Shown here: in pieces, positions 10,406-61,147 of the stretch
How the letters are laid out: each line of letters begins with the position of its first letter
How positions within the stretch are numbered: the first letter of the stretch is position 1
NCBI GenBank assembly: GCA_002269645.1
Contig: NIVC01002547.1
Coordinates: forward strand, 60,849 to 124,848
Reading direction: 5' to 3'
From: Macrostomum lignano
Taxonomy: Eukaryota
Length of the DNA stretch: 64,000 nucleotides
Program-made: the position numbers and the translations under genes
Notes under the pieces: generated by a model
What the model was told of the DNA's origin: nothing
Seen by the model: only the letters and a program-made list of their open reading frames with translations
Database searches by the model: none

Positions 10406-10842
10406 CGCTGATTATGCTTTGGCTTCCTGCTAATTGACTGACCTTCAGGTTGGCTCGCCAACCCCATTCTCAGCCTCCGCCATTCCAGCCCGAGCCCTCA
10501 GTCTAGTCCTTGAGCTGCCACGCCTGTGCCGTTTGTGCACCAGCTTTAGCTGAATTCATAATGCACTTTGCTGCCTTAGTATAAATATTTCAATGATTCC
10601 TTCGATTCGCTACTTATAGTAGGTGGTTGGTGATTTTTTGTATTCAAACTCACTTTCTGTTATGTAAAAATCTTCCACTGTCTTCTCGATTCTCGTTAGT
10701 GTGCGTTCAGTTTGATTTGTTTCCTGCTTGTACAAATCCGTTTATTCTTTTTGTACTGGTATGTCTCCACGACCGCTATGAAATTTCCAAAATTGCTTTG
10801 TGCGGTTTAATTCAGCTTAATGGGCTGCTTGCGAGTCTTTAG

Positions 10843-28949: not shown

Positions 28950-34443
<5,494 letters not shown>

Positions 34444-38405: not shown

Positions 38406-41400
38406 GCCAAACCCAGTGACCAATCTGAATGCAAACACTGTGACCAAACCCAGTGACCAATCTGAATGCAAACACTGTGACCAAACCCAGTGACCAATCT
38501 GAATGCAAACACTGTGACCAAACCCAGTGACAAATCTGAATGCAAACACTGTGACCAAACCCAGTGACCAATCTGAATGCAAACACTGTGACCAAACCCG
38601 GGGGGGCCGTAGCCCAGCGGTAGCGCAGCTGCTCTGGTGTGCCGCGACCCAGGCTCGATTCCAAGTGCAGCCACATTAATTTGGGGCTGAATTGGAATCT
38701 CGGCTTGGCTCGCTTGTGCAATTAACGGCCTTGAGAGCCAACCCCCCAAGGCGCAGTGAAGTGTACATGCCTAACAATTGATAAAGTTAGGGCCGCTGTA
38801 CACTCCTGTGTGAGTGTGTGCCTGCGTAACGTATCCGCGCGCTTGTATGCCTGCTCAGGGGAGTCGGCGGAATGGGCAGTAATGCCTCTCGCCGGTTGTG
38901 TGCCAATGACGCTTAAATTGCGCCAGGGTGCACACAACCCCCCTGCCTCTAATAAAAAAAATGTGACCAAACCCAGTGACCGATCTGAATGCAAACACTG
39001 TGACCAAACCCAGTGACCAATCTGAATGCAAACACTGTGACCAAACCCAGTGACCGATCTGAATGCAAACACTGTGACCAAACCCAGTGACCGATCTGAA
39101 TGCAAACACTGTGACCAAACCCAGTGACCAATCTGAATGCAAACACTGTGACCAAACCCCGGCCAGTGACCAATCTGAATGCAAACACTGTGACCAAACC
39201 CAGTGACCGATCTGAATGCAAACACTGTGACCAATCTGAGTACAAACACTGTGACCAAACCCAGTGACCAATCTGAATGCAAACACTGTGACCAAACCCA
39301 GTGACCGATCTGAATGCAAACACTGTGACCAAACCCAGTGACCAATCTGAATGCAAACACTGTGACCAAACCCCGGCCAGTGACCAATCTGAATGCAAAC
39401 ACTGTGACCAAACCCAGTGACCGATCTGAATGCAAACACTGTGACCAAACCCAGTGACCGATCTGAATGCAAACAATGTGACCAAACCCAGTGACCAATC
39501 TGAATGCAAACACTGTGACCAAACCCAGTGACCAATCTGAATGCAAACACTGTGACCAAACCCAGTGACCGATCTGAATGCAAACAATGTGACCAAACCC
39601 AGTGACCAATCTGAATGCAAACACTGTGACCAAACCCAGTGACCAATCTGAATGCAAACACTGTGACCAAACCCAGTGACCAATCTGAATGCAAGCACTG
39701 ACCAAACCCAGTGACCAATCTGAATGCAAACACTGTGACCAAACCCAGTGACCGATCTGAATGCAAACACTGTGACCAAACCCAGTGACCGATCTGAATG
39801 CAAACACTGTGACCAAACCCAGTGACCAATCTGAATGCAAACACTGTGACCAAACCCCGGCCAGTGACCAATCTGAATGCAAACACTGTGACCAAACCCA
39901 GTGACCGATCTGAATGCAAACACTGTGACCAAACCCAGTGACCGATCTGAATGCAAACAATGTGACCAAACCCAGTGACCAATCTGAATGCAAACACTGT
40001 GACCAAACCCAGTGACCAATCTGAATGCAAACACTGTGACCAAACCCAGTGACCAATCTGAATGCAAGCACTGACCAAACCCAGTGACCAATCTGAATGC
40101 AAACCAGTGACCAATCTGAATGCAAACCCAGTGACAAATCTGAATGCAAACACTGTAACCAATCTGAATGCAAACCCAGTGACCAATCTGAATGCAAACC
40201 CAGTGACCAATCTGAATGCAAACTCAGTGACAAATCTGAATGCAAACACTGTGACCAATCTGAATGCAAACACTGTGACCAATCTGAATGCAAACCAGTG
40301 ACCAATCTGAAAGCAAACCAGTGACCAATCTGAATGCAAACCAGTGACCAATCTGAATGCAAACCCAGTGACAAATCTGAATGCAAACACTGTGACCAAT
40401 CTGAATGCAAACCCAGTGACCAATCTGAATGCAAACCCAGTGACCAATCTGAATGCAAACCAGTGACCAATCTGAATGCAAACCCAGTGACCAATCTGAA
40501 TGCAAACCCAGTGACAAATCTGAATGCAAACACTGTGACCAATCTGAATGCAAACCCAGTGACCAATCTGAATGCAAACCCAGTGACAAATCTGAATGCA
40601 AACACTGTGACCAATATGAGTACAAACACTGTGACCAAACCCAGTGACCGATATGAATGCAAACACTGTGACCAAACCCAGTGACCAATCTGAATGCAAA
40701 CACTGTGACCAAACCCAGTGACCGATATGAATGCAAACACTGTGACCAAACCCAGTGACCAATCTGAATGCAAACACTGTGACCAAACCCAGTGACCAAT
40801 CTGAATGCAAACACTGTGACCAAACCCAGTGACCGATATGAATGCAAACACTGTGACCAAACCCAGTGACCAATCTGAATGCAAACACTGTGACCAAACC
40901 CAGTGACCAATCTGAATGCAAACACTGTGACCAAACCCAGTGACCAATCTGAATGCAAACACTGTGACCAAACCCAGTGACAAATCTGAATGCAAACACT
41001 GTGACCAAACCCAGTGACCAATCTGAATGCAAACACTGTGACCAAACCCCGGCCAGTGACCAATCTGAATGCAAACACTGTGACCAAACCCAGTGACCAA
41101 TCTGAATGCAAACACTGTGACCAAACCCAGTGACCAATCTGAATGCAAACACTGTGACCAAACCCCGGCCAGTGACCAATCTGAATGCAAACACTGTGAC
41201 CAAACCCAGTGACCGATCTGAATGCAAACACTGTGACCAAACCCAGTGACCAATCTGAATGCAAACACTGTGACCAAACCCAGTGACCAATCTGAATGCA
41301 AACACTGTGACCAAACCCAGTGACCAATCTGAATGCAAACACTGTGACCAAACCCAGTGACCAATCTGAATGCAAACACTGTGACCAAACCCAGTGACCA

Positions 41401-42237
41401 ATCTGAATGCAAACACTGTGACCAAACCCAGTGACAAATCTGAATGCAAACACTGTGACCAAACCCAGTGACCAATCTGAATGCAAACATTGTGACCAAA
41501 CCCAGTGACCAATCTGAATGCAAACACTGTGACCAAACCCAGTGACCAATCTGAATGCAAACACTGTGACCAAACCCAGTGACCAATCTGAATGCAAACA
41601 CTGTGACCAAACCCCGGCCAGTGACCAATCTGAATGCAAACACTGTGACCAAACCCAGTGACCAATCTGAATGCAAACATTGTGACCAAACCCAGTGACC
41701 AATCTGAATGCAAACACTGTGACCAAACCCAGTGACCAATCTGAATGCAAACACTGTGACCAAACCCAGTGACCAATCTGAATGCAAACACTGTGACCAA
41801 ACCCCGGCCAGTGACCAATCTGAATGCAAACACTGTGACTAAACCCAGTGACCAATCTGAATGCAAACACTGTGACCAAACCCAGTGACCAATCTGAATG
41901 CAAACACTGTGACCAAACCCAGTGACCGATCTGAATGCAAACACTGTGACCAAACCCAGTGACAAATCTGAATGCAAACAAACACTGTGACCAAACCCAG
42001 TGACCGATCTGAATGCAAACACTGTGACCAAACCCTGTGACCAATCTGAATGCAAACGCTGTGACCAATCTGAATGCAAACGCTGTGACCAATCTGAATG
42101 CAAACGCTGTGACCAATCTGAATGCAAACGCTGTGACCAATCTGAATGCAAACGCTGTGACCAATCTGAATGCAAACACTGTGACCAAACCTAGTGACCA
42201 ATCTGAATGCAAACACTGTGACCAAACCCAGTGACCA
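38406..42237. repeat. 3.8-kb 37-bp minisatellite (CCAAACCCAGTGACCAATCTGAATGCAAACACTGTGA), interrupted by a SINE
   Basis: About 100 units, including 24-25 bp deletion variants (40090-40620, 42040-42180) and +5 bp CGGCC variants. The >1000-aa ORFs here are repeat translations. Confidence 0.97.
38600..38961 (+). mobile_element. tRNA-derived SINE, full length (362 bp), with 13-bp TSD
   Basis: tRNA-like head GGGGCCGTAGCCCAGCGGTAGCG with A box (38610-38620) and B box GGCTCGATTCC (38652-38662). 3' end AATAAAAAAAA. TSD TGTGACCAAACCC at 38587-38599 and 38962-38974. Confidence 0.88.
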
Positions 42238-43184: not shown

Positions 43185-46100
43185 TCACGAGTTGTCCGCA
43201 ATGGTCTTGTCAATCCAGTTCCTGAAGTACGGCACGTGGGTGTACACTCCCGGCGAGTTGGGCTCGGCGCATCCGTTGCCGAAGGAGGTGATGCCCACCA
43301 CGGTGTGCCGAGCTGTGGGTGGCATTCAGGAGTGCCTTCGGGAGGGGCTGGTACTCGCAGAATTATATTTTTCTCATGTTTTTCAAGTCAAAATTCGGTA
43401 CTGCCTAAGCTTTTAAAATACTCGTATTTTCGATGAAGCGGGGATACTGGCTCCACGGCTATATATTAGATATTATACACTTTCGTGATTTGAGCAGTAT
43501 TCGACCTCCAAGGCTGCGAGTGCAACGCTAACCTGCCTTCATAGTTATAGTAAAGTTATTCAGGTGCTTGCAGGGGTTGTCAGGCTGCTGACTCACCCTC
43601 CCCACTCCTCAGCGGCCCCCTACTCACCCTCCACACTCCTCAGCGGCCCCCTACTCACCCTCCCCACTCCTCAGCGGCCCCCTACTCACCCTCCCCACTC
43701 CTCAGCGGCCCCCTACTCACCCTCCCCACTCCTCAGCGGCCCCCACTCACCCTCCCCACTCCTCAGCGGCCCCCTACTCACCCTCCCCACTCCTCAGCGG
43801 TCCCCCTTCGCGGCAGCGCCGCCGGCCTCAGCGGGTGGTCCGGGGTCGACGATTTTGCAGACCAGCGGGCCGCCAGAGTCGCCCTGGCAGGCGTCGATGC
43901 CGCCCTCTTTGTAGCCGGCGCAGAACATTCGCTCCGTGATGTTCTCGAACTCGTACATGCGGTCGCAGACCTCCCGGCGAATCAGCGGCACCTCGGCCAT
44001 CTGCAGGGCCTCCGGATAGTCAAAGCCTGCAAGGACGAGCTTTGTGTTCAGCGCTGGGAAACCCGAGCCACATCCCACCGTGTAACTTGATTGCGGATTG
44101 CTGAGTTCTCGTATTGGGTGGTCCTTGCTGTGCATGATTTCCCAAGGACCGATTCAATCCAGCAGCTGTTGCCATCTTTCCTTCGTCTCTTCTCCTACAA
44201 CTTACCTCCCCTGGATCCCCAGCCGCTGATGAGGCACTTGGAGGTTGGATCATAGTTCATCGGCTGGTTCTGCCGAGGCAGGCAGGCGGGCTGGACGCCC
44301 GCGTTGAACTCCAGGTAGCCGCGGCTGTCCGGCTTGATGCGCAGCAGGCTGATGTCGAAGTCGTAGGCCGGCGGGCCCGTGTACCGCTCGTGCTGGATCA
44401 GCAGGTCCACATCGAACTCGCGCTCGTACTGATCGGGCGCCGTGTTGTTCCAGTCGCCTGCGCGCACCACAAAGGCGGACTTTGGCATGCTGAGGGCGAT
44501 TGGGTGGTGCGGAGTGGGGAGGGTGCGGAGTGGGATATTTGCAGATTGGTGGGTGAGGCGGCACTCACTTGGCGTAGGGGAAGCAGTGGGCGGCGGACAG
44601 AATCCAGCGATCGGACAAGATGGTGCCGCCGCACCAGGCAGAGCTGCTGGGCAGCTTGATGTCCTTGCGCAGTCCGGCGGGCCGGATCACCTTCTTCCTG
44701 ATGGCGACCTGCCATGGCACCTCCGTGATGCCAGAGTTGCGGCCGCCACCGATGCGGTAGAAGCTGTAGGGGGCCAGGCGCTTGCCGCATATCTCTGAGT
44801 AGTCTGCAGCGAGTGTGAGGGGTGATGTCTGTCAGGATCTGTTATGCCCTGTCATGAAAAGCACACAGCGGATTTGTAGGCTCAAAGAAGGCAGGTTTTT
44901 GCTATGTAGGAATTAAGTACGATGATGTGCTGATAGATAGCAAACAGGAAGACTGCATTATTTTCTCTAGGATGCTTATAATTTATCCTCTTTTAAGCTG
45001 AGATGCGAGACAAGTCTATAGCTCCAAACGGTCACAAGAAACTAAAAGGCAAAGCCCAGATAAGCAGAGCCGGGTAACAGACTTGAGCAACGCTCACCCG
45101 TCTGCGGCGCCTGGGTGGTTTCCGGGTCGGTGACCTCAGGCAGGCCGCACAACAGCTGCACTGCCTCATCTATCGAGCAGGTGGACTCGCCCCAGTCTCT
45201 GAGGCTGCAGTCGAACAGCGAGGCCTCGGTGCCCTCGCAGCGAATGTCCTGCAGCCACATCACCACGCCAGCTGGAGTGCTGAATTGCCCGCGCTGTGCC
45301 AGCGCCCCCTGCCTGGGATGCCCAGGTGGCGGCAGACGACCTTCACCTCCTCGTCCGAGAAGTGATCGTCGCACACGACGCCCTGGATGCCGCCGCGGGA
45401 GATCTCCACGACACCCGCCGTTCTGTTGTGCGACAGAGTCACGTCTGCGGCGCGGGGGAAATGCGGCTGTGCAATTTGGCCTGCAGCAACTCAGGACACC
45501 TGCAGCCCCTGCCACTCATCACTCAGGACACCTGTACCTGCAGCCCCTGCCACTCATCACTCAGGACACCTGTACCTGCAGCCCCTGCCACTCATCACTC
45601 AGGACACCTGTACTTGCAGCCCCTGCCACTCATCACTCAGGACACCTGTACCTGCAGCCCCTGCCACTCATCACTCAGGACACCTGTACCTGCAGCCCCT
45701 GCCACTCATCACTCAGGACACCTGTACCTGCAGCCCCTGCCACTCATCACTCAGGACACCTGTACCTGCAGCCCCTGCCACTCATCACTCAGGACACCTG
45801 TACCTGCAGCCCCTGCCACTCATCACTCAGGACACCTGTACCTGCAGCCCCTGCCACTCATCACTCAGGACACCTGTACCTGCAGCCCTTGCCACTCATC
45901 ACTCAGGACACCTGTACCTGCAGCCCCTGCCACTCATCACTCAGGACACCTGTACCTGCAGCCCTTGCCACTCATCACTCAGGACACCTGTACCTGCAGC
46001 CCCTGCCACTCATCACTCAGGACACCTGTACCTGCAGCCCTTGACACTCACTCAGGACACCTGTACCTGCAGCCCTTGACACTCACTCAGGACACCTGTA

Positions 46101-49100
46101 CCTGCAGCCCTTGCCACTCATCACTCAGGACACCTGTACCTGCAGCCCCTGCCACTCATCACTCAGGACACCTGTACCTGCAGCCCTTGACACTCACTCA
46201 GGATGTCCCTGCAGCCCCTGCCACTCACTCAGGATGTCCGTCAGTCCCCCTGGTACTCACTCAGGATGTCCGTCAGTCCCCCTGGTACTCACTCAGGATG
46301 TCCGTCAGTCCCCCTGGTACTCACTCAGGATGTCCGTCAGTCCCCCTGGTACTCACTCAGGATGTCGCACTCGGTCTCGTCCCAGCCGTCCGAGCAGTCG
46401 GGGACACCGTCGCACATTTTCGACAAAGGAAAGCAGCGACTGTCGCAGCGGACCTCGTGCATGCTGCAGGCTGAAAAGTCAATTCAGAGATTGCGATTGC
46501 TACGAGCTGACTTGAAAGATTGCAAATATTGCTTCAGGGCGCCTCTCGAAAGATCCATAACCAGGTATGTTGGCCTGCCTTACAAGCACTCACGCCTGTC
46601 TATCAAGCAGATGAGCCCGGCCACATTCTTGACGCTGCAGGCGCCGCTGTCGCCCCAAGGCCGGTGGGCGCAGTCCGTGATGTTCTTGGCTCCGGGGCTG
46701 CAGTGGACACCACTGAGGATGAAGCCGCCGGTTCCGCGACCGAACTGCTGCCAGGCATTCAGGATGAAGCGCTCGTGGCCGGGGTAGCCCAGCTGCTGGC
46801 AGATCACGTCGGCCATGGCAGCGTTCAGCCCATCATCGCAGACGAGGCCGCGCTGGTTGAACAGGCGAATCTCGATGCGGCCCTCGTGGTTGTCCGAGCC
46901 GCCACTCAGCACCAGCTCGTAGTTTTTGGCCGGGTCTGCGGGCCCAGAGATTCGATGGGAACGGGTACTGGCCGCATCTCAGACTGGGAGAGACCGAGTT
47001 CTGGCGGCATCTCAGACTGGGAGAGACCGAGTTCTGGCGGCATCTCAGACTGGGAGAGACCGAGTTCTGGCGGCATCTCAGACTGGGAGAGACCGAGTTC
47101 TGGCGGCATCTCAGACTGGGAGAGACCGAGTTCTGGCGGCATCTCAGACTGGGAGAGACCGAGTTCTGGCGGCATCTCAGACTGGGAGAGACCGGGTTCT
47201 GGCGGCATCTCAGACTGGGAGAGACCGAGTTCTGGCGGCATCTCAGACTGGGAGAGACCGAGTTCTGGCGGCATCTCAGACTGGGAGAGACCGAGTTCTG
47301 GCGGCATCTCAGACTGGGAGAGACCGGGTTCTGGCGGCATCTCAGACTGGGAGAGACCGAGTTCTGGCGGCATCTCAGACTGGGAGAGACCGGGTTCTGG
47401 CGGCATCTCAGACTGGGAGAGACCGGGTTCTGGCGGCATCTCAGACTGGGAGAGACCGGGTTCTGGCGGCATCTCAGACTGGGAGAGACCGGGTTCTGGC
47501 GGCATCTCAGACTGGGAGAGACCGGGTTCTGGCGGCATCTCAGACTGGGAGAGACCGGGTTCTGGCGGCATCTCAGACGGGAGAGACCGAGTTCTGGCGG
47601 CATCTCAGACTGGGAGAGACCGAGTTCTGGCGGCATCTCAGACTGGGAGAGACCGAGTTCTGGCGGCATCTCAGACTGGGAGAGACCGAGTTCTGGCGGC
47701 ATCTCAGACTGGGAGAGACCGAGTTCTGGCGGCATCTCAGACTGGGAGAGACCGAGTTCTGGCGGCATCTCAGACTGGGAGAGACCGGGTTCTGGCGGCA
47801 ATAAAAAACCAAGATCTCAAATCTCACCCTTCCCGCAGCGACTGTTGATCTCGTCAGAGAAGTCTCCGCAATCGTCAAAGCCGTTGCAGGCCTGCGATTT
47901 TTTCACGCAATGACTGTTGTTGCAGAGGAAGTCGTCAGCGTCATTGCAAGCTGGGGTTGAGGAGTTGGTTTATTGAGAGTGCGACTCTTGAGCTAATAAT
48001 AAAGTGTCACTGCCTGAAATCCAGCTAATAATAAACTGTCACTGCCTGAGATCCAGCTAACAATAAACTGTCACTGCCTGAGATCCAGCTAACAATAAAC
48101 TGTCACTGCCTGAAATCCAGCTAATAATAAATTGTCACTGCCTGAAATCCAGCTAATAATAAAGTGCCACTGCCTGAGATCCAGCTAACAATAAACTGTC
48201 ACTGCCTGAGATCCAGCTAACAATAAACTGTCACTGCCTGAGATCCAGCTAACAATAAACTGTCACTACCTGAGATCCAGCTAACAATAAACTGTCACTG
48301 CCTGAGATCCAGCTAACAATAAACTGTCACTGCCTGAGATCTCTTTTCAATCGATCGCTGACAGCCGTGACTGCACCATAGTTTTGAGCCATATCCAACG
48401 GACGAGTCCCAAGCCCCAGCCCGCTCTCACTCTCAGGGATCTCGTAGTACTTGGCCTCGATGCTGGGGTCGGCCTTACTGGCCGGGTCTGTTATTCGGCT
48501 TCCCAGCAGGAAGCACTTGGACTGGAAGCGCTGCTCGCCGGTCCGGTAGTAGATGAAGCTCTTGCAGAAGAACTGTTCCAGGCGGTCGCAGTGCTTGGCA
48601 CACTGAAATTCCATGCCAGGGGTTGCTCGCATCCTGCTCACGGGATTTCAGTTTAGAAGCAGCTCCCTGCCATCGCTCACCTGCACCAGAGTCTTCCTGT
48701 AGTAGATCGCCAGCTTGGCGTCGGCGGGGACGCTCGACTCGTCGATGCCAGCCGTCATCTGGAACTCGTTTGCCAGCTCCGCCTCGGCCTCTGCAATTCA
48801 CCGGGCATTCGGAAATCTCAGCCAGCTGAAGATTCGAAGACTCGGGGCTTCTCTCCGTGGGGGGCGGCGGAGCAGCTCAGCGCTAAACGCATCTGACTCT
48901 CGCGTCACGAGCCGTGGGAGTCACACTCAAGGACCAACCCCCAAGGAACACAGGGTGTACATGCCTGCTGATTAGAGAGTCGGGGCCGCTGTACACCCCG
49001 TGTGAGCGTGTCTGTGAGTGCGTGCCTGCTGACTAGAGAGTCGGGGCCGCTGTACACCCGGTGTGAGCGTGTCTGTGAGTGCGTGCCTGCTGACTAGAGA

Positions 49101-52100
49101 GTCGGGGCCGCTGTACACCCTGTGTGAGCGTGTCTGTGAGTGCGTGCCTGCTGACTAGAGAGTCGGGGCCGCTGTACACCCCGTGTGAGCGTGTCTGTGA
49201 GTGCGTGCCTGCGCACAATATCTCAGTGTCGCGCATCGACTTATTTATATTAAAAAATACTCGAGTGCACGCTTCTCTCAGAGCGAACCTCAATCAGACT
49301 CAGCCAGCACAGACTCAGTCAGGACAGACTCAGTCAGCACAGACTCAGTCAGCACAGACTCAGCCAGCACAGACTCAGTCAGCACAGACTCACGGGCCTT
49401 GACGCTCATGCAAGCCTCCTCAGTCTCGTCGTCGCCGAGGTCGCAGTCGGCAAGCCCGTCGCACACCTGGTCCATTGAGATGCACCTGCGGGATCCAGGC
49501 AAGGAATTTCAGTCTTGGCATTGCAGTGCTGCGGGCCTCATTAAACTGGAAGCAATTCTGCGCTGTACTTGTGAAATTTCCTGCAGTAGAAGTGGTCGCT
49601 CGTGCAGGTGTCTGCAATGCGACAGCGGTGTGCACTTGCGAGTTCTTGCCGACGAATCAGGTTTACGTCATAGAAGACTCAGCTTGGCGACTCACAGTTC
49701 CTGCAGAAGGCCTCGTCCTCGTCCTCCTTGCCAACGCAGTCGACGAACCCGTCGCAGACCTGCCGCTCCACTACGCAGCTGCGGGCAGGGCGTCCGAGAC
49801 AAGCATGTTCCAGCCTCACTCACACAGCCTCACTCACGCAGCCTCACTCACACAGCCTCACTCACACAGCCTCACTCACACAGCCTCACTCACACAGCCT
49901 CACTCACACGGCCTCACTCACACAGCCTCACTCACACAGCCTCACTCACACAGCCTCACTCACACAGCCTCACTCACACAGCCTCACTCACACGGGCCGG
50001 TAGCTCAGCATGCTCGGGCAGAAAAAGTCCTCATGCCGGTCGCACTTCTCGTGGCCAAACCCCGGCGTCATCGGCGGTCCCTCCTGCGGCTGCGGCAGCT
50101 CATCCGAGCACTGCCTGAGGCTGCAGTAGCCAAAGACGTTGTTCTTGTTGTCCACCCAGCACCAGGGCTTCGCGTCTCCGTCCGGGTTGCGGCAGAGGCC
50201 GTGGCCGCTGAGACCCGCATTCGGGTAGGTGCTCGGATTGATCAACTGGTTGTCGCCCCACGGCTGGCAGGGCGTGCCTTTGTCGGTTCTGGGGGCGAGG
50301 GAGTCCGCTGTGTGCACTGGCTGTAGCCTGAGATCTGTGTGCTGTAGCCTGAGATCTGTGTGCTGTAGCCTGAGATCTGTGTGCTGTAGCCTGAGATCTG
50401 TGTGCTGTAGCCTGAGATCTGTGTGCTGTAGCCTGAGATCTGTGTGTTTTAGCCTGAGATCTGTGTGCTGTAGCCTGAAGATCTGTGTGCTGTAGCCTGA
50501 GATCTGTGTGCTGTAGCCTGAGATCTGTGTGCTGTAGCCTGAGATCTGTGTGCTGTAGCCTGAGATCTGTGTGTTTTAGCCTGAGATCTGTGTGCTGTAG
50601 CCTGAGATCTGTGTGCTGTAGCCTGAGATCTGTGTGCTGTAGCCTGAGATCTGTGTGTTTTAGCCTGAGATCTGTGTGCTGTAGCCTGAAGATCTGTGTG
50701 CTGTAGCCTGAGATCTGTGTGCTGTAGCCTGAGATCTGTGTGCTGTAGCCTGAGATCTGTGTGCTGTAGCCTGAGATCTGTGTGCTGTAGCCTGAGATCT
50801 GTGTGCTGTAGCCTGAGATCTGTGTGCTGTAGCCTGAGATCTGTGTGCTGTAGCCTGAGATCTGTGTGTTTTAGCCTGAGATCTGTGTGCTGTAGCCTGA
50901 AGATCTGTGTGCTGTAGCCTGAGATCTGTGTGCTGTAGCCTGAAGATCTGTGTGCTGTAGCCTGAGATCTGTGTGCTGTAGCCTGAGATCTGTGTGCTGT
51001 AGCCTGAGATCTGTGTGCTGTAGCCTGAAGATCTGTGTGCTGTAGCCTGAGATCTGTGTGCTGTAGCCTGAGATCTGTGTGCTGTAGCCTGAGATCTGTG
51101 TGCTGTAGCCTGAAGATCTGTGTGCTGTAGCCTGAGATCTGTGTGCTGTAGCCTGAAGATCTGTGTGCTGTAGCCTGAGATCTGTGTGCTGTAGCCTGAG
51201 ATCTGTGTGCTGTAGCCTGAGATCTGTGTGCTGTAGCCTGAAGATCTGTGTGCTGTAGCCTGAGATCTGTGTGCTGTAGCCTGAGATCTGTGTGCTGTAG
51301 CCTGAGATCTGTGTGCTGTAACCTGAGATCTGTGTGCTGTAGCCTGAGATCTGTGTGCTGTAGCCTGAGATCTGTGTGCTGTAGCCTGAAGATCTGTGTG
51401 CTGTAGCCTGAGATCTGTGTGCTGTAGCCTGAAGATCTGTGTGCTGTAGCCTGAGATCTGTGTGCTGTAGCCTGAGATCTGTGTGCTGTAGCCTGAGATC
51501 TGTGTGCTGTAGCCTGAAGATCTGTGTGCTGTAGCCTGAGATCTGTGTGCTGTAGCCTGAGATCTGTGTGCTGTAGCCTGAGATCTGTGTGCTGTAACCT
51601 GAGATCTGTGTGCTGTAGCCTGAGATCTGTGTGCTGTAGCCTAAGATCTGTGTGCTGTAGCCTGAGATCTGTGTGCTGTAGCCTGAGATCTGTGTGCTGT
51701 AGCCTAAGATCTGTGTGCTGTAGCCTGAGATCTGTGTGCTGTAGCCTGAGATCTGTGTGCACTGGCTGGATCCTCATCAAAGCGGGGATCCTCATCAAAG
51801 CGGGGATCCTCATCAAAGCGGGGATCCTCATCAAAGCGGGGATCCTCATCAAAGCGGGGATCCTCATCAAAGCGGGGATCCTCATCAAAGCGGGGATCCT
51901 CATCAAAGCGGGGATCCTCATCAAAGCGGGGATCCTCATCAAAGCGGGGATCCTCATTGTCTCCACCTGGTAGTCGGTGCCGATGCCCTCGTAGCAGTCC
52001 GCGCTGGCCACCGCCAGCTTCTGGCAGACGAAGGGCAGGCGGGTCTTGCAGCTGATGTTGTCCCACCAGAAGTAGTTCACGTCTACATCCCGTCTGCTGC

Positions 52101-54010
52101 GCGGATTCTGGAACAGCTTCGACATGGCGATGCAGGAGCGCTGCTGTGGATCCCCCGCCGGCCTCTGATCGGTGCCGGGCTCGAACCCCGGGAACCACAG
52201 CGGCTGCCGCGCCATATGGATCGTGTCCACGAAGGTCCAGGACGTGTACTGCGAGCCCACGTCCCTGAAGGAGCCGAACTGACCTCCTGTCCACACCGCG
52301 TTGAGTGCTGCAGGTGGTGCGGTAGGTGGCTTGCAGGCCTGACAGTTCGCAAGTCTGACATTTTGCAAGTCTGACATTTTGTAATTCTGAAAGTTCACAA
52401 GTCAGCAAACACCTAACACACTCAGCAGTCATCTGACTCAATCAGCAGTCTTCTGACTGAATCATAAATCATCTGACTCAAATACCAATCATCTGACTCA
52501 ATCCGCTGTCATCTGACTCAATCATAAATCATTTGACTCAATCAGCATTCATCTGACTCAATCATCAATCTCTGACTCAATCATCAGTCATCTGACTCAA
52601 TCAGCAATGATCCGACTCAATAAAAATCAATCATTGACTCAATCAGCAGTCATCTGACTCAATCAGCAGTCATCTGACTCAATCATAAATCATCTGACTC
52701 AATCAGCAATGATCCGACTCAATAAAAATCAATCATTGACTCAATCAGCAGTCATCTGACTCAATCAGCAGTCATCTGACTCAATCAGCAATGATCCGAC
52801 TCAATAAAAATCAATCATTGACTCAATCAGCAGTCATCTGACTCAATCAGCAGTCATCTGACTCAATCATAAATCATCTGACTCAATCAGCAATGATCCG
52901 ACTCAATAAAAATCAATCATTGACTCAATCAGCAGTCATCTGACTCACTCAGCAGTCATCTGACTCAATCATAAATCATCTGTCTCAATCAGAAGTCATC
53001 TGACTCAATCAGAAGTCATCTGACTCAAAAAGCAGTCATCTGACTCAATCCGCTGTCATCTGACTCAATCCGCTGTCATCTGACTCAATCAGAAGTCATC
53101 TGACTCAATCAGAAGTCATCTGACTCAATCCGCTGTCATCTGACTCAATCAGAAGTCATCTGACTCAATCAGAAGTCATCTGACTCAATCAGCAGTCATC
53201 TGACTCAATCAGCAGTCATCTGACTCAATCAGCAGTCACTGACCACATCGAACTGACTCACATCTGAACTTGGTGTACAGCATGTTGGTAATGTAGTTGC
53301 CCTCCTCCAAGGAGTTCACCGACACCAGCTTGGCACCCTTGGCCTGGCAGGCGGTGGCGGCCTCGGTAGCAGTCTTAGGCTCGGTCTCCAGCCGGTAGCA
53401 GAGGCCGTCGAAGCTGGACCAGCCCCAGTCGCAGCCTGCGTTGGGAGACAATGCGATGTCTTCATTTATGAATTGTGAGCTACTAAAGTGCTACTACTAC
53501 TAAAGAAATCAGGTGACTCGAACGAAAGGCAAAGAGAGAGGAAAAGTAAGGGCAGAGCAGGAAGGGCAAGGCAGAAGGGATTGAGAGATGATTACGTAAA
53601 CAAGAGAAAATACAAGAAGAGTGGGAGAGGAATTGGAGGGGAAGGAAAGCGAGAGTCAGGAGAGGAAGAGACAGGAAAGGGAGAGAGGAGAAGGAGAAGA
53701 AGGAAAGGGAGAGTGAGGAGAGGGAGAGGAAGGAAAGGGAGAGTCAGGAGAGGAAGAGACAGGAAAGGGAGAGAGGAGAAGGAGAAGAAGGAAAGGGAGA
53801 GTGAGGAGAGGGAGAGGAAGGAAAGGGAGAGTGAGGAGAGGAAGAGACAGGAAAGGGAGAGAGGAGAAGGAGAAGAAGGAAAGGGAGAGTGAGGAGAGGG
53901 AGAGGAAGGAAAGGGAGAGTGAGGAGAGGAAGAGAGAGGAAAGTAGAGTAAGGAGAGAGAGAGGAAGGAAAGGGAGAGAGGAGAGGAAGAGGAAAGAAAG
54001 GTGGAGAGAT

Positions 54011-54042
<32 letters not shown>

Positions 54043-54171
54043 AAGGAAGGGAGAGTGAGGAGAGAGAGAGGAAGGAAAGGGAGAGAGGAGAGGAAGAGGA
54101 AGGAAGGGAGAGTGAGGAGAGAGAGAGGAAGGAAAGGGAGAGAGGAGAGGAAGAGGAAAGAAAGGTGGAGA

Positions 54172-54235
<64 letters not shown>

Positions 54236-55973
54236 GGGAGAGAGGAGAGGAAGAGGAAGGAAGGGAGAGTGAGGAGAGAGAGAGGAAGGAAAGGGATAGA
54301 GGAGAGAGAGAGGAAGGAAAGGGAGAGAGGAGAGAGAGAGGAAGGAAAGGGAGAGAGGAGAGAGAGAGGAAGGAAAGGGAGAGAGGAGAGAGAGAGGAAG
54401 GAAAGGGAGAGAGGAGAGAGAGAGGAAGGAAAGGGAGAGAGGAGAGAGAGGGGAAGGAAGGGAGAGAGAGGAGAGAGAGGGAGTGTGAGCAAGAAGGGCA
54501 GCAGAGGAAGCATTCAGCCAGAGCCACACCGGTGTTGTAGATGCACTCGATCCCGGTGGTGGAGTTCAGGTCGCAGGGTGGCATCAGCTTCCGGTTGCAG
54601 TCGAACAGCGTCAGCTCGTCGCCGTCGTGCTTGCACTGCACGTGGCCCACGATGATGTCCTGCCGCTTGTAGTGGCCGGTGCCGTAGTACGAGTTCTTGT
54701 ACACCCGGTTGGCTCCGCTGCGGGCCGAGTTCAGTTTGAACTCTCGTGCTGCCCGCTTTTTCCCCTTCACAAACCGGCTCTCACCCCATCTACTCTCACC
54801 CTATCTACTCTCACCCCATCTACTCTTACCCTATCTACTCTCACCCCATCTACTCTCACTCCATCTACTCTCACCCCATCTACTCTCACCCCATCTACTC
54901 TCACCCCATCTACTCTCACTCCATCTACTCTCACTCCATCTACTCTCACCCCATCTACTCTCACCCCATCTACTCTCACCCCATCTACTCTCACCCCATC
55001 TACTCTCACCCCATCTACTCTCACCCCATCTACTCTCACCCCATCTACTCTCACCCCATCTCACCTCACCTGCTCTCACCCCATCTACTCTCACCCCTTC
55101 TACTCTCAACCCATCTACTCTCACCCTATCGAATCTCGCCATATCGACTCTCACGTATCAAATCTCGCCCTATCAAATCTCGACCTATCGAATTTCACCT
55201 ATCGAATCTCACCCTATCGAATCTCACCCTATCGAATCTCACCTATCGAATCTCACCTATCGAATCTCACCCCAGGCAGGCCCTGTTCCCAGCTCACAGC
55301 TCGAAGCCCAGCTGGTGGCAGACCAGCGTGGCCTCAATCTGCTGCACGTAGTCACCGCAGACGAGCCCCCAGACGCCGTGGTAGTTGACCTCGACGCGGC
55401 CCTCGTTGGGGTTCATCTTCATCAGGTCGCCGCGGATTCGCACGATCTGCGGCGTCGGGGGCACCCCGCCGGTGCGGTGGCGGCTCAGCTCGTCCGGCTT
55501 TGAGTCCGGCGAGGTGCGCGGATAGCCGGGCTGCGGTTCGGGGTTCGAGTCGCCGAACAGGCGCAGCGGGATGAAGGGGCTGGTGGCCTCGCGTCTGCTG
55601 CGCGCGTGCCGCGAGCCCTCGACTGCGGGGCCGGGTGGGATGGTTACGTTGAGCAGAGACGCTCCTCATCACAGGAACTACTCACAGTAGTAGTTGTGAC
55701 TCAACAGAAATTTTATTTGTGTTCTGATATGAATTTTTCATTATTCACAATGTTGAACATTTTTTACTCTTTTTTAGCCTTGCTTACAGGTGAAAGCAAG
55801 CAAAAGCAAGTTAGAAAAGTTGCAAAATTTAATAACAAAGGTTTGCCTGCTCAAGTCAAGAGCAACTCACGAGTCTTGACCGCTGCCCCCGTCAGGCTGA
55901 GGCCCGCCGCCCGGCTCGCAAGCAGCGGCGCCAGCAGCAGCAGCGGTAGTAGAAGCGACAGCTGGGTTGCCAT
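43185..55973 (-). CDS. Mosaic secreted trypsin-like serine protease, ~1,259 aa, 19 exons: SP-SRCR-C-type lectin-kringle-LDLa-LDLa-PAN-LDLa-SRCR-LDLa-SRCR-trypsin
   Basis: Exons: 55973-55871, 55622-55298, 54717-54530, 53435-53262, 52307-51967, 50320-49992 (5' edge uncertain), 49778-49696, 49611-49569, 49485-49394, 48790-48681, 48602-48431, 47950-47828, 46935-46594, 46470-46357, 45444-45098, 44803-44569, 44489-44206, 44026-43782, 43312-43185. All introns are GT-AG and phases are consistent after two 1-nt corrections (G/C runs at ~45305-45309 and ~43799-43806). Catalytic motifs [13 protein letters not shown] and [10 protein letters not shown] are intact. Confidence 0.9.
43591..43805 (-). repeat. 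31-bp tandem repeat made of the exon 18 end plus donor site
   Basis: 7 copies of GGGGGCCGCTGAGGAGTGGGGAGG|GTGAGT(A). Confidence 0.95.
45488..46366 (-). repeat. Compound 32-bp and 38-bp minisatellite in protease intron 14
   Basis: GACATCCTGA|GTGAGT... units (31-32 bp) grade into about 18 copies of a 38-bp unit TCCTGAGTGATGAGTGGCAGGGGCTGCAGGTACAGGTG. Confidence 0.95.
46968..47800. repeat. 33-bp minisatellite in protease intron 12
   Basis: About 25 copies of TCTGGCGGCATCTCAGACTGGGAGAGACCG(A/G)GT. Confidence 0.97.
47990..48342. repeat. 32-bp minisatellite in protease intron 11
   Basis: About 11 copies of CCAGCTAACAATAAACTGTCACTGCCTGAGAT. Confidence 0.95.
48859..49256 (+). mobile_element. Second, diverged SINE sharing a core with the 38.6-kb SINE; internal 61-bp segment amplified four times (48964-49207)
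   Basis: G-run and degenerate tRNA-like head. Shared blocks CCAACCCCC(C)AAGG, GTGTACATGCCT, GGGCCGCTGTACAC, TGTGAG and TGCCTGCG. A-rich end near 49250. Confidence 0.7.
49295..49393 (-). repeat. 15-bp repeat derived from the intron 9 donor
   Basis: Donor GTGAGTCTGTGCTGA followed by 6 copies starting CTGAGTCTG. Confidence 0.92.
49812..49993 (-). repeat. 14-bp repeat forming most of protease intron 6 (GTGAGTGAGGCTGT)
   Basis: About 13 copies starting exactly at the donor. Confidence 0.95.
50308..51768. repeat. 21-bp minisatellite in protease intron 5 (TAGCCTGAGATCTGTGTGCTG)
   Basis: About 68 copies with +A variants; flanked by a 16-bp direct repeat. Confidence 0.97.
51769..51957. repeat. 18-bp minisatellite in protease intron 5 (GATCCTCATCAAAGCGGG)
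   Basis: About 10.5 perfect copies abutting the 21-bp array. Confidence 0.97.
52425..53240. repeat. 20-bp minisatellite in protease intron 4 (TCTGACTCAATCAGCAGTCA)
   Basis: About 40 variant copies. Confidence 0.95.
53620..54485. repeat. Compound GA-rich repeat with (GA)n in protease intron 3
   Basis: Almost pure purine tract with ~23-26 bp subunits and perfect GA runs. Confidence 0.95.
54778..55270. repeat. 14-15 bp minisatellites in protease intron 2 (CTCTCACCCCATCTA; CGAATCTCACC(C)TAT)
   Basis: About 23 copies plus about 9 copies. Confidence 0.93.
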
Positions 55974-57047
55974 GGTGACTGCGATTTTGAAGGAAAGTTC
56001 AAGCCGGTGGTCAGAATTTCAAGGCCAGAACAGACAAGGCCAGAGTTTCGGGGCCTCGGCCGGACAACCTGGGCCTGCCGCCGCCTTTTATCTCGGCGCC
56101 TTCTGGCCCGCATTAAGCCTCATCCATTCAGCCTCCCGACGCGGCTGATGAAGGGCCGGTGTCCTCACCTGCCCCCGCAGCCTGTCATCGCCGAATCCCG
56201 GGGCACCGACGGTCAGGTGGGCAGCGGTGATTTCTCACCTCCAGGCCAGCAGCCGAATTGATAAGAGAGCCAAGAAAAATCGCCCGCCCGCCCTGACCGC
56301 GCGGCCCCAATTAAAATATTTGCTCAGCTTTGCGAATTTATCTTATGCAGCGCGCACATTGCTACTGATTGGCGATAGACAGTAGTGTACAATGGTTGCA
56401 AATTTCACGACACAAGGAGTTTACCGTTGGCTTTGAATCGGAGGCAATACGAAGCTCGCTATGGTGTTTTTCTGAGCTGAAATCGGAGATCAATCAGGTA
56501 AAAATGTAAAATCCTCATGGGGATGCTGGAATGGCTTTGAATAAGCTGGTACGAGCGCACACATTCGGACAGTGCTGCTGCCTCACCAGTTGCCATGGAG
56601 AGTCGCCAATAACTGTTCGGCAGGCCACGGTATACCGGAGATGAACCGGTGCTGGTGCGGAAGCGCGGGCGCCCCCCCCCCCCAACAGGCTGGGCGGTTG
56701 CTGACGAGCCCGGACTGAAACCCAAGACCTGCTGTTGGCGGCAGAGGCCCCTCAGAAGTGGCAGGTTTATGATGGGCGGCCACCGACACCAACGCGGTGT
56801 CGGGTTTCACCATTTTATAGCCGCGGCCGCCGCGCTCTCCCCGCTCCTTCCGGCCGCCGGAATCCCACTGAGGATCTCGGGCGCGAGCCGCGGCCACCCC
56901 ATCACTGCACAAAGCAGATTCGGCAAGAAGCCAAATTACTGAAATCCGAGCTCGAGGGTTTTTCCTATTCAGCTTTTTGTTGCTCCGCTCATTGATAAAT
57001 ATTTATGGCTGCGCCTGGCGACTCCGCCCTCAGCTATTGAGACAAGG

Positions 57048-57465
57048 AGTGCCAGACAAGGAGTGCCAGGCAAGGAGTGCCAGGCAAGGAGTGCCAGGCA
57101 AGGAGTGCCAGGCAAGGAGTGCCAGGCAAGGAGTGCCAGGCAAGGAGTGCCAGACAAGGAGTGCCAGACAAGGAGTGCCAGACAAGGAGTGCCAAACAAG
57201 GAGTGCCAGACAAGGAGTGCCAGACAAGGAGTGCCAGACAAGGAGTGCCAGGCAAGGAGTGCCAGGCAAGGAGTGCCAGGCAAGGAGTGCCAGACAAGGA
57301 GTGCCAGACAAGGAGTGCCAAACAAGGGGTGCCAGACAAGGAGTGTCAGACAAGGAGTGCCAGACAAGGAGTGCCAGACAAGGAGTGCCAGACAAGGAGT
57401 ACTAGACAAAAACTACTAGACAAGGAGTGTCAAGGAGTGTCAGACAAAAAGTGTCAGACAAGGAG
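57048..57465. repeat. 14-bp minisatellite (GTGCCAG[A/G]CAAGGA)
   Basis: About 29 copies, degenerating to the right. Confidence 0.95.
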
Positions 57466-58254
57466 TCATTTTTCACTTGCAAAAGTACCAAGAGCGCAGT
57501 TTGGGATCACAACTTTGACCATTCAAATAAAAAGATCACGCCAGAGAATTCAGACAGTCCGCGGCAAGACAATCATTTCGGGGACCTGTTCTGAGAACGC
57601 GGCTACTCGCCAACAAAACGGGGCGCATTCAGAGCCGGGTGCTTTACCGCAGCTAATTAAAAAGTTGGCAGAGGTTGCCGAGGCCCCAGACTCCATGCAG
57701 TCCGCAGGGGGAGTCGCGTGCGGCTCCTCAAGCGCGGCGCTGCCGGCCCCAATTTGGCACAGAGCCGGCCGCCTCATCTGCCCCCCCCAAGGATAAGAAG
57801 CCAGAAGCAAAATAACGAGGCCTGGGATAACACACGCGACTGGTGCCTTGATGGACGGGCCGGGCTGAGAGCCCCGCGGGAGGTTTTGAGTCGGGGTCGC
57901 CGGGTGAGATTTTGGGAGATAAAAAAACCGCCGGGCCACGAGACCCCGGCTTGGCTGGCTGCCAGCAATTTCTCATAGAATTCTAAATATTTATGGCGGC
58001 ATGTGTGCCGGCCCGCATTGGCGGCGAGACCCCGGCCGCCCCGCCCAGGCGGCCTCAATGCCGCAAGCTGAGCAAACAGTTGGGGCGGGGGCCCCGGATA
58101 CTCGGGCTTGCGAAATCCCCATTCAGCCCGTTTAGCCTCCCATCCACAGTGGCCCCTGCCTGAGTCGTTGTCAAATTAATTTCTCCCATTTGAATAATTT
58201 CTCTGCTTTTCTTCATGAAGCCAATCTGCCTCGCAATATCCTTGAACTATCCTA

Positions 58255-59442
58255 CAGATTTTGGGATCTGCAGATTGAACTGGGATCTGTAGATTCAATT
58301 GGGATCTGTAGATTGAACTGGGATCTGTAGATTGAACTGGGATCTGTAGATTCAATTGGGATCTGTAGATTGAACTGGGATCTGTAGATTGAACTGGGAT
58401 CTGCAGATTGAACTGGGATCTGTAGATTGAACTGGGATCTGTAGATTGAACTGGGATCTGTAGATTGAACTGGGATCTGCAGATTGAACTGGGATCTGTA
58501 GATTGAACTGGGATTTGTAGATTGAACTGGGATCTGTAGATTGAACTGGGATCTGTAGATTGAATTGGGATCCGTAGATTGAATTGGGATCTGTAGATTG
58601 AATTGGGATCTGTAGATTGAACTGGGATCTGTAGATTGAACTGGGATCTGTAGATTGAACTGGGATCTGTAGATTGAATTGGGATCTGTAGATTGAATTG
58701 GGATCCGTAGATTGAACTGGGATCTGTAGATTGAATTGGGATCTTTAGATTGAACTGGGATCTGTAGATTGAACTGGGATCTGTAGATTGAACTGGGATC
58801 TGTAGATTGAATTGGGATCCGTAGATTGAATTGGGATCTGTAGATTGAATTGGGATCTGTAGATTGAACTGGGATCTGTAGATTGAATTGGGATCCGTAG
58901 ATTGAATTGGGATCTGTAGATTGAACTGGGATCTGTAGATTGAACTGGGATCCGTAGATTGAATTGGGATCTGTAGATTGAACTGGGATCTGTAGATTGA
59001 ATTGGGATCTGTAGATTGAATTGGGATCTGTAGATTGAATTGGGATCTGTAGATTGAACTGGGATCTGTAGATTGAATTGGGATCTGTAGATTGAACTGG
59101 GATCTGTAGATTGAACTGGGATCTGTAGATTGAACTGGGATCTGTAGATTGAATTGAGATCTGTAGATTGAACTGAGATCTGTAGATTGAACTGGGATCT
59201 GTAGATTGAATTGAGATCTGTAGATTGAACTGGGATCTGTAGATTGAACTGGGATCTGTAGATTGAATTGGGATCTGTAGATTGAATTGGGATCTGTAGA
59301 TTGAACTGGGATCTGCAGATTGAATTGGGATCTGTAGATTGAACTGGGATCTGTAGATTGAACTGGGATCTGTAGATTGAACTGGGATCTGTAGATTGAA
59401 CTGGGATCTGTAGATTGAACTGGGATCTGTAGATTGAATTGG
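58255..59442. repeat. 19-bp minisatellite (GGGATCTGTAGATTGAA[C/T]T)
   Basis: About 62 copies. Confidence 0.97.
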
Positions 59443-61147
59443 CATCCCCAGACATGAAGCACTGCATGCCAGCAGCCCCCCACAGGTGTCATGCGATGCT
59501 TGGCAGCGGCAGCTGAGGCTCAGCCAGCAAATAAATTTTATGACGCGATGAGTTTCCGTTTCGGTAGGAAATGGCGCTGGCAGCCCCGGCAGGGGTTTCC
59601 CGTGCCCCGCTGACCCAGCTGACCCAGCTGACCCAGTTCTCGGCTGCCGCGGCCGTGAGAAACTGCCTCAGTTTCCTCTGTAGCGCACCGCCCGTGCCGC
59701 CTCTGCATCCGGGATTCGCTGGTGCAGGCAGGGGTCTGTTGGTGGCACGGGGAGGGGGGCAACTGCCTGGCCGGCTGCCTGTTGCTTGCGGCAGAAATCA
59801 AAGCCGAGATTTTTGGCTCTGGAAGACTCAGAAAGTGCTTTCTAGATTTGGATGCTTATTGTGCTTAGCTCTTAGATGGCACTGCTTTGCGGCCAAATGA
59901 TATTCTCACTATGTAGTCACCATGGCCAACAACATCGAGTGCCTTCCCGAGTTTATTCTCCAAGCAGCACTGAGATGTAAAACCCGAGTGAAGCGATATT
60001 GCTGGAAAATTTCGCACCGTAAACTGCAGTCTGCGGGCCATAAACAGCGAACCAAAAGTGTCTCATCCATCGCTCCGATAAAACTTTCCCCTTTGTGCCA
60101 TAGACATTTCCCACGCTGAGACAGTCGGGGTTAAAGAACGCGGAAGCTCAGCGCATGTCCTGTAAAATCTCAGCGAGCAATAAAATATTTATGAAGGCCG
60201 AAACTGAACAGTCAAGCAACAAGCCCTGCTCTGCCCGGCTCCCCGGTTGTCAATGTGGCTCGCAAAATGTTTAATTGTCAGCCCGCGCTCCGCACTGCAG
60301 GGCCCGCAGGTTTGCTCTGATTTCAGTTTCCAAAGCCCATAATTGTAGCGATCCCCAGTTGCCAATGGGAGTTCGGGGGCCATAAAGCACAGAAACTGAC
60401 ACCCAACTGGCAAAAATGCAGCGAATGCCATGGTTTTTCTTGTTTCACCGACTGCTTTTTGTTACTTTCAGTTCTGCTTTCAGTCGCTCTCGAGTTTCCA
60501 CGCGCGAGTCGCCCCGCTGCCCGAAACAGAAATCTCTGGCAGGTTTGGTGCCGTCTCCGTGCGCCCTCATCTCTGGGTTGTTTTCACGGTGGAATTTGTC
60601 ATTCTGAAACTTGTCGGGGCATTTTTATGGCCCCGAAGGTCCTTCAGGCAGATGATGACCAATGCGGACTCATGACCCACACTTTGGCTCCCCAGCAAGG
60701 CACCGGAAAACCGCTGGTTGAGATTGAGGACTCATGGTTGAAATTAAGGAAAAGCTGGTTGGTAAAAGAAACTGCAACGCTTTCAAGAGAAGATTTGATT
60801 ATCTACGCAGAAATGACGAGTGGCTCATGGTGTTCAGCATCACAGGCTGATTTTCCAGTGTTAATTGACCCTGCGGCCTGTGAAGAATTGCCTGCCAGAT
60901 TTATTATCTCTGTAATTGCTTTCAGCCCGATTCTCAGTGCCGGGGCTTCAGGCCGCAGGTGCGGGCTCGAAACTCCCTCTGCAGATCGCTGCGTCAGTTC
61001 GGAGTGCGACACCCAATTCCCGGCTAAACAGTGCGGCATTGCGTCACTCGCGGCGGTATCTCCCAGCCTCCTTCATCCTCGGCCCCGGCCGGCAAAGTCA
61101 AACAGCCGCAGATAAGCTGGAGTGTCAACTTTGCCGTGCAAGTGCGC

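Follow-up and report, generated by a model that had tools for sequence, protein, structure and literature searches.

Minisatellites at the donor junctions of a neurotrypsin-like protease gene in Macrostomum lignano

The stretch of DNA analysed here, referred to as the window, is 64,000 nt of the flatworm Macrostomum lignano (assembly GCA_002269645.1, contig NIVC01002547.1, positions 60,849 to 124,848). Over the 28,741 bases compared, it is identical to this contig of the assembly, which is named Mlig_3_7. It contains a neurotrypsin/PRSS12-like serine protease gene, BOX15_Mlig012109g2, which occupies 43185..55973 of the minus strand, from an ATG at 55973 to a stop at 43185. Ten of its introns carry minisatellite arrays, and several of these arrays start on the donor junction of the intron that contains them. 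The exon model was built from reading frames and GT-AG sites and has 19 exons and 18 introns, which keep the numbering of the initial annotation. All features of the gene given below are on the minus strand, in window coordinates, and a slash marks an exon-intron junction. A prokaryote-style reading of the window was rejected, as the sequence is that of an intron-rich animal gene.

The encoded protein has the domain order SRCR, C-type lectin, kringle, LDLa, SRCR, LDLa, SRCR and trypsin. Its Pfam matches are to SRCR (three), Kringle, Lectin_C, Ldl_recept_a (three) and, at the C terminus, Trypsin. The His, Asp and Ser motifs expected of a neurotrypsin-like protease are found in the translation (SAAHC, DFDISLL and GDSGGP). 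The closest database matches are M. lignano proteins that are 99% identical, and relatives are named Neurotrypsin or Serine protease 12.

Two further copies of this gene, L001 (Mlig020209g1) and L002 (Mlig012109g1), are located on other contigs and have exons that are about 99% identical. The three are near-identical gene copies in one assembly and are not proven alleles. Two paralogues are more distant (L003, 48% identity; L004, 42% identity). When the proteins of L002, L003 and L004 were mapped onto their own loci, every junction was resolved as GT-AG. The main sample consists of 27 array-bearing introns in three related genes, and four more array-bearing introns occur elsewhere in the window. 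Tandem repeats are abundant throughout. Arrays with a Tandem Repeats Finder score of at least 80 make up 35% of the window and are intronic and intergenic alike, and simple and tandem repeats account for 15% of the M. lignano genome (PMC5730564). The genome paper makes no mention of junction arrays (PMC5730564).

Five arrays of the focal gene start on or immediately beside a donor. If the first intron base is position 0, their starts are at -26 (intron 18), -10 (intron 14), -9 (intron 4), -2 (intron 6) and +1 (intron 9). The remaining arrays start at +9 (intron 5), +23 (intron 2), +27 (intron 12), +46 (intron 3) and +89 (intron 11). These offsets bear out the central observation of the initial annotation, which was that the arrays of introns 6, 9, 14 and 18 copy their own donor junctions.

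The simplest of these arrays is in intron 6 (49811..49993), where 13.1 copies of the 14-mer GTGTGAGTGAGGCT run up to 32 nt before the acceptor. The first unit includes the last two bases of exon 6, which ends at 49992, and the donor. This array contains 25 decoy GT sites above the threshold of a position weight matrix (PWM) built from 58 real donors. The intron 18 array (43591..43807) has seven copies of the 31-mer AGGGGGCCGCTGAGGAGTGGGGAGGGTGAGT, and its first unit joins the last 26 bases of exon 18 (43782-43807) to GTGAGT. Six of its decoys are identical to the donor and eight are weaker. Intron 14 has two related arrays. Array A (46192..46366) contains 5.5 copies of the 32-mer GACATCCTGAGTGAGTACCAGGGGGACTGACG, with a 31-mer variant in the other gene copies. 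It begins with ten exon bases (46357-46366) followed by GTGAGT, and seven decoys in this intron match the authentic donor exactly over -3..+6. Array B (45498..46227) is a derivative of array A made up of 19.6 copies of a 38-mer. The two have a 10-nt core in common. Array B, which stops 53 nt short of the acceptor, keeps TCCTGAGTGA..GT and ranks first when compared with its own donor window.

The two other cases are less complete. In intron 9, 6.5 copies of the 15-mer TGAGTCTGTGCTGAC (49295..49392) begin at intron base +2, adjacent to the donor G at 49393, and the unit corresponds to intron bases +2 to +16. In later copies the sequence has become CTGAGT; these copies have no GT and are dead as donors. 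This array includes no exon bases and is a borderline member of the boundary-spanning class. Intron 4 opens with a 2.2-copy duplication of 14-16 nt (53238..53270) that includes nine exon bases and the donor and is present in all three gene copies. It is followed from +18 by 41 copies of the 20-mer TTGAGTCAGATGACTGCTGA (52422..53243). For this 20-mer, the intron's own donor window is the best match among 58 donor windows. It is best read as a degenerate descendant of the junction-spanning duplication and would then represent a fifth case. The donor-like character that the initial annotation ascribed to the units of intron 4 needs qualification in this sense, and no functional decoys are left in the array.

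In introns 6, 14, 18 and 4, then, the first unit contains exon bases and a splice site, which defines the boundary-spanning class. The donor is reiterated in downstream units of introns 6, 14 and 18 and not in those of introns 9 and 4, where GT has been lost. Apart from the intron 14 pair, units of different introns have no more than 8-10 nt in common, and a common origin of the units was rejected on these short matches. No focal unit was found outside this gene in the approximately 100 kb searched (the window and the loci of the four other genes), which is a weak test of transposon or introner origin. Because the units are alike over only 8-10 nt and none recurs elsewhere, independent origins are supported, as had been proposed at the outset.

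The same arrays are found at the same junctions in L001 and L002 with other copy numbers. For the window, L001 and L002 in turn, there are 13, 40 and 28 copies in intron 6; 41, 385 and 41 copies of the 20-mer in intron 4; and 25, 44 and 11 copies in intron 12. The intron 9 15-mer is present 6.5 times in the window and 9.5 and 7.5 times in the other copies, and the intron 18 unit seven times in the window and eight times in L002. In L001, intron 4 extends from 5558 to 13364, and its array of about 385 copies occupies 7.7 kb. Array-free introns differ in length by no more than 1-3 nt among the three gene copies.

These comparisons bear on the suspicion that the assembly, being built from PacBio reads of a repeat-rich genome, has created the arrays or misplaced them. 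The assembly was made with Canu from PacBio reads and polished with Pilon, and REAPR rated only 64% of its bases as error-free (PMC5730564). Residual indel errors add to the suspicion, for example frameshifts in a BiP gene of the same window and in G runs of exons 15 and 18. However, identical junctions are occupied by the same arrays on three separate contigs, where copy numbers differ, and the lengths of array-free introns agree. For this reason the junction duplications are not regarded as assembly artefacts, a danger raised in the initial annotation, and comparison of the deposited contigs leaves such an origin highly improbable.

Smaller defects are a separate matter. In the window copy only, exon 5 has lost 14 nt at its 3' end (51967..51968), and the deposited intron 5 of this copy is non-canonical (TG..CT). 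In exon 15, a G5 run (45304..45308) is one base short relative to both other copies, and the frameshift ends the deposited 901-aa model. Another G5 run, in exon 18 (43802..43806), is G6 in the intact L002, and the missing base creates an in-frame TGA before the donor. L001 has only the exon 18 gap among these defects. The one-base gaps in G runs are probable assembly errors, and this is made likelier because the BiP gene in the window is frameshifted too. The 14-nt deletion in exon 5 is possibly real.

The remaining arrays of the gene are not copies of a junction. Intron 2 contains 34 copies of a 15-mer (54778..55274) starting at +23, against which its own donor ranks 31 of 58. Thirty donor-like GT sites are found in this array, and 29 of them outscore the authentic GTGAGC with the same matrix. 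The GTGAGA motif pointed out in the initial annotation thus corresponds to real decoy sites, but such sites are not above the level seen in antisense or shuffled sequence. The arrays of intron 12 (46968..47800; 25 copies of a 33-mer, from +27 to -32), intron 11 (47991..48341; 11 copies of a 32-mer, from +89 to -40) and intron 3 (53635..54483; purine/pyrimidine-rich, with periods of 28 and 88 nt) are unrelated to their junctions. A second array in intron 9 (48962..49212; 4.1 copies of a 61-mer) has donor-like motifs on the antisense strand only. A proposal that the donor-like motifs of introns 2, 12 and elsewhere are junction relics was rejected by the PWM test and by self versus non-self ranks.

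Intron 5 had been described as carrying an acceptor-like junction duplicated at both ends of its array. It contains 10.6 copies of an 18-mer (51768-51957) and 68 copies of a 21-mer (50320-51760), which together span 50320..51957. A 16-nt repeat does flank the 21-mer array (50308-50323 and 51753-51768). However, the true acceptor in L001 and L002, both of which have an intact exon 5, reads CTCGCCCCCAG/AAC and is located 31-32 nt downstream of the array, and the ancestral acceptor is at 50289-50290 in the window, so the flanking repeat is not a duplicated acceptor. It is an older 27-nt variant of the unit that has been kept at the array edges. The exon 5 donor in L001 and L002 reads ...CGGGGACTCGCCGCCAG/GTGGAG. 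In the window copy, CCCCCAG/AACC was set aside as the exon 6 acceptor where it breaks the frame, yet comparison with L001 and L002 identifies it as the ancestral acceptor. The in-frame alternative in the window copy, CTACAG/CCAGTG, is hypothetical.

Arrays that repeat a donor raise the question of which donor is used. The deposited models of L002 and L001 (P0016 and P0001) splice GT-AG at the first unit of each array, with the reservation that reads multi-map among the three copies. In intron 2, the authentic donor is used in the deposited models despite the 29 higher-scoring decoys. These models derive from StringTie/TACO assembly of STAR-mapped RNA-seq and give indirect evidence on donor use. 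Among the three gene copies the ratio of nonsynonymous to synonymous divergence (dN/dS) is 0.12-0.16, at a dS of 0.8-2.2%, so the gene is under purifying selection while carrying the arrays. On these values a pseudogene with relaxed constraint was rejected, and one of the readings offered in the initial annotation, that decoy-donor arrays are tolerated, is upheld.

Another reading was that the decoys are put to use. In that case the arrays would recruit U1, tune splicing efficiency or nonsense-mediated decay, and be kept by selection. The numerous intact decoys (25 in intron 6, and seven and six identical to the donor in introns 14 and 18) could be taken in its favour, as could the finding that the junction core is the most conserved part of the three unit variants of intron 14. 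However, intact decoys are also predicted if the arrays are young or are homogenised against a selected first unit. Copy numbers vary freely (13, 40 and 28 in intron 6; 41, 385 and 41 in intron 4), the decoys of introns 9 and 4 have lost GT, and the paralogues do not have such arrays. Donor-like motifs also show no enrichment on the sense strand. Among 26 arrays that do not overlap a donor, a donor-like site is found in six on the sense strand and six on the antisense strand, compared to 6.6 in dinucleotide shuffles. With copy numbers drifting and decoys decaying in this way, the suggestion that they tune splicing finds no backing and appears quite improbable.

The initial annotation also linked the arrays to intron gain, for which tandem duplication of junction sequence is a proposed route. 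In the Rogers model, tandem duplication of an AGGT-containing segment creates a new intron, and the junction duplications would accordingly have created the introns in which they are found. Intron gain by internal tandem duplication (Rogers model cited in PMC3087553; De Grassi and Ciccarelli 2009, PMC2812944) resembles the present case in that splice-signal sequence is duplicated at or near a border. Intron 6 might appear to be a candidate, since it is nearly all array and collapses to 46 nt, and exon 5 and intron 5 have ends that are weakly alike. The latter was rejected as a sign of insertion or intron gain, as the intron is present in both paralogues and the similarity is weak and C-rich. 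More generally, recent gain would leave the introns absent from the paralogues, but every one of the 18 focal introns is matched in position and phase in L003, as are 17 of them in L004, while the content of the paralogous introns is unrelated. Because the introns are common to paralogues of 42-48% identity, the arrays are secondary expansions in old introns and there was no intron gain. In contrast to the published model, the introns predate the arrays and at most one donor, that of exon 18, has moved. The probability that the duplications made these introns is close to nil.

How often arrays should include a donor by chance can be estimated from geometry. In the three family genes almost every intron longer than about 200 nt contains an array, and many array-free introns measure 73-123 nt. 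The null model places a unit of length u randomly on the collapsed intron and allows it to hang over into the exon if the donor is included. For the 27 introns it predicts 3.97 donor-spanning arrays if placement is fully neutral, a figure that rises to 6.8 when the final 30 nt of the intron are taken as protected. Four were observed, or five with intron 4. Array starts, which range from -26 to +89, look spread across the border with no pile-up. Self and non-self junctions were also compared, with one-sided p values, in arrays that do not physically overlap the tested window. There was no excess similarity of an array to its own junction for exon and donor core (-25..+6; p=0.30) or for acceptor core and exon (-15..+25; p=0.69). 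The self versus non-self check recommended in the initial annotation thus returned no enrichment at these junction cores for the non-overlapping arrays of this sample. Intron bases +7..+30 do give a mild signal (p=0.014), which reflects degenerate array edges reaching towards the donor.

These figures argue against the idea put forward in the initial annotation that a mutational process favours exon-intron borders, whether through transcription- or splicing-coupled instability or through slippage seeded by donors of the GTGAGTGAG type. Several donors do have internal short repeats, GTGAGTGAG being one example, and a further degenerate case occurs in an unrelated GST gene about 6 kb away. Also in favour of such a process, all cases are in the focal gene, where they account for 5 of 10 array-bearing introns, and the two paralogues contribute 0 of 17 (Fisher p=0.003), but this comparison is post hoc, the gene having been picked as striking, and gives a lead and not a result. 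On the other side, the total is at or below the geometric expectation, non-overlapping arrays do not resemble their own junctions, and in three more array-bearing introns of the window the array begins only at about +45 to +60. A border-targeted process is therefore considered unlikely.

Whereas donors are included in arrays as often as geometry predicts, acceptors are not. None of the 27 introns has an array that reaches an acceptor, compared to about 4.1 expected by symmetry (P=0.01). Array ends are at least 13 nt upstream of the acceptor, many of them at -29 to -32. Arrays that end 29-32 nt before the acceptor are found in focal introns 5, 6 and 12 and in introns 5, 6 and 17 of L003, and it looks as if a fixed branch-point zone limits array expansion. 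The asymmetry fits a situation in which extra donors downstream are tolerated, extra acceptors are selected against and the branch-point/acceptor zone is protected. It provides a simple genomic read-out of splicing tolerance, in which additional donors downstream of the real one are harmless and additional acceptors upstream of it are not.

Taken together, the arrays are probably ordinary intronic minisatellites in an array-prone genome, four or five of which began as chance duplications straddling a border. Several points weigh against this explanation. In addition to the concentration of cases in the focal gene, the paralogues fall below expectation, with a probability of about 1% under the 3'-protected null, obtained by multiplying the individual probabilities by hand, and P=0.07 under the fully neutral null. 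The sample is small, being limited to the 27 array-bearing introns of three related genes and the four others in the window, and the null relies on collapsed intron lengths that were estimated after the event. Intron 6 (49779-49991) collapses to about 46 nt, whereas the shortest of 31 array-free introns in the three genes is 73 nt. Finally, donor use is taken from gene models, and decoys may be used at a low level.

If the arrays did arise from chance border duplications, the process would begin with a tandem duplication of 14-32 nt that straddles the exon-intron border or starts at intron base +2. New copies would be added downstream of the authentic donor, leaving the exon and the first donor intact. 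The spliceosome would presumably take the donor that lies furthest upstream, and all later units would leave with the intron. The mirror event at the other end of the intron would set an early acceptor ahead of the authentic one and be selected against, so that arrays would stop before the branch-point/acceptor zone. Copy number would later drift by slippage or unequal exchange, and array edges would decay. If the first donor were lost, splicing could move to a later unit, and array sequence would become coding.

Such a move is the likely source of a 60-nt extension at the 3' end of exon 18 (43782..43841). The extension encodes about 20 residues that fall within the protease domain, after GDSGGP and before the TSFG strand. 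In alignments it is absent from the paralogues and from the orthologue of another Macrostomum species, which reads CKITETG/KYTVVG where M. lignano has the additional residues. Exon 18 is 246 nt long in L002, compared to 177 nt for its homologue in each of the two paralogues. At the ancestral donor position the sequence is now G/GACCAC, and the present donor is 60 nt downstream, in the first unit of the array. The intact copy P0016 uses this first-unit donor. The first half of the extension contains CCGCTGAGG, a 9-nt match in register with the array unit, and 33 of 2000 shuffles reach its score. The extension likely represents array units that were exonised after the original donor was lost and splicing moved to a later unit. 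A shift of this kind is seen in experiments on the human F7 gene (PMC1557585).

The initial annotation knew of no description of this pattern, but boundary-spanning minisatellites have been reported before, in human F7, IFI6, CBS, LMNB2 and PDGFA (PMC1557585) and in amphioxus (PMC3087553, PMC3902484). The first monomer of a 37-bp minisatellite in F7 IVS7 crosses the border, and IFI6 (6-16), CBS IVS13, LMNB2 and PDGFA are similar (Borensztajn et al. 2006, PMC1557585). Of several identical donors in F7 IVS7, the most upstream alone is used, and if it is mutated the next monomer takes over (PMC1557585). The M. lignano arrays likewise have a first monomer across the border and a reiterated donor. 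Copy number, which is polymorphic in the human F7-type arrays, varies here between near-identical gene copies, an instability expected of the class. Use of the upstream donor, with the next monomer taking over upon its loss, may also be common to both, although in M. lignano the first part follows from RNA-seq-guided annotation and the second is what we infer for exon 18, whereas both rest on minigene experiments in F7. The flatworm arrays differ in that a single gene has four or five of them and an intron can hold as many as 25-30 decoys, that some have lost GT in later copies, and that their host has short introns.

The amphioxus 'mirages' are boundary-spanning minisatellites in Adh3, globin, TnC and PGBD5 (2010, PMC3087553; Pavelitz et al. 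2013, PMC3902484). Their length is unstable between haplotypes, and they are reportedly spliced normally in spite of repeated AG/GT signals (PMC3087553, PMC3902484). As in M. lignano, units of tens of bases cross a border, the arrays occur in several genes of one species, and length is unstable. Both 5' and 3' boundaries are duplicated in amphioxus, whereas only donor borders are duplicated here (acceptors are reached in 0 of 27 introns), and some mirage units are longer, at 150-160 bp. It has been proposed that mirages provide material from which exon-intron structure can change.

The present finding shows no new mutational process and no new regulatory device. It extends a class known to date from humans and amphioxus to a flatworm, in which one gene holds several of the arrays, and the possible exonisation at exon 18 indicates how such arrays could alter proteins. 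A bolder interpretation can be offered only tentatively and is somewhat doubtful. It holds that boundary minisatellites are unusually frequent in some M. lignano genes (five in the protease, one in the GST gene), that donors sliding along arrays are a source of coding change, as in the roughly 20 residues gained by exon 18, and that a strict first-donor rule applies even against the 29 stronger decoys of intron 2. If this were true, an animal capable of transgenesis would offer a natural test bed for 5' splice site choice.

Further arrays occur in other genes of the window. An intron of the GST gene on the plus strand (36715-37077, between exons that end at 36714 and start at 37078) is 363 nt long and consists entirely of a degenerate array with a unit of about 29 nt, exemplified by CAGGTGTC...TAGAAATCTCACC. 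The first of these units begins at exon CAG/GTGAGA, and the array is an additional boundary-spanning one, of older age, in an unrelated neighbour gene. The junction segment matches the rest of this intron better than all but 2 of 1000 shuffles. The BiP gene, of the BiP/GRP78 type of HSP70, is located at about 28995-34290 on the minus strand and has two array-bearing introns, with arrays from about +45 and about +60. Together with one in a gene for a coiled-coil protein, these make up the three introns with array starts in that range. Between 33304 and 33795, frameshifts run across the conserved VPAYFND...AIAYG region of the BiP gene, which points to assembly indels or a decayed copy.

Intergenic arrays are of the same general kind as the intronic ones in at least two places upstream of the protease gene. 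Thirty-one copies of a 14-mer (57040-57466) are located about 1 kb upstream of its start codon, and 62 copies of a 19-mer (58262-59446) further upstream. More than 3 kb of arrays with periods of 37 and 111 nt (38407-42237) take up a large part of the interval that separates the GST gene from the 3' end of the protease gene. At 61147-62902, a 332-nt tandem repeat present 5.3 times is built of subrepeats of about 30 nt. A 4.3-kb satellite on the plus strand (10848-15173), just downstream of the coiled-coil protein gene (8016-10405), consists of 255 copies of the 17-mer TTTGTTTGTGTGGTTCA and has extreme GC and AT skew. The window also contains, at 24843-26141 on the plus strand, an unbroken open reading frame of 432 codons with BTB/POZ and BACK domain matches that looks like a single-exon gene.

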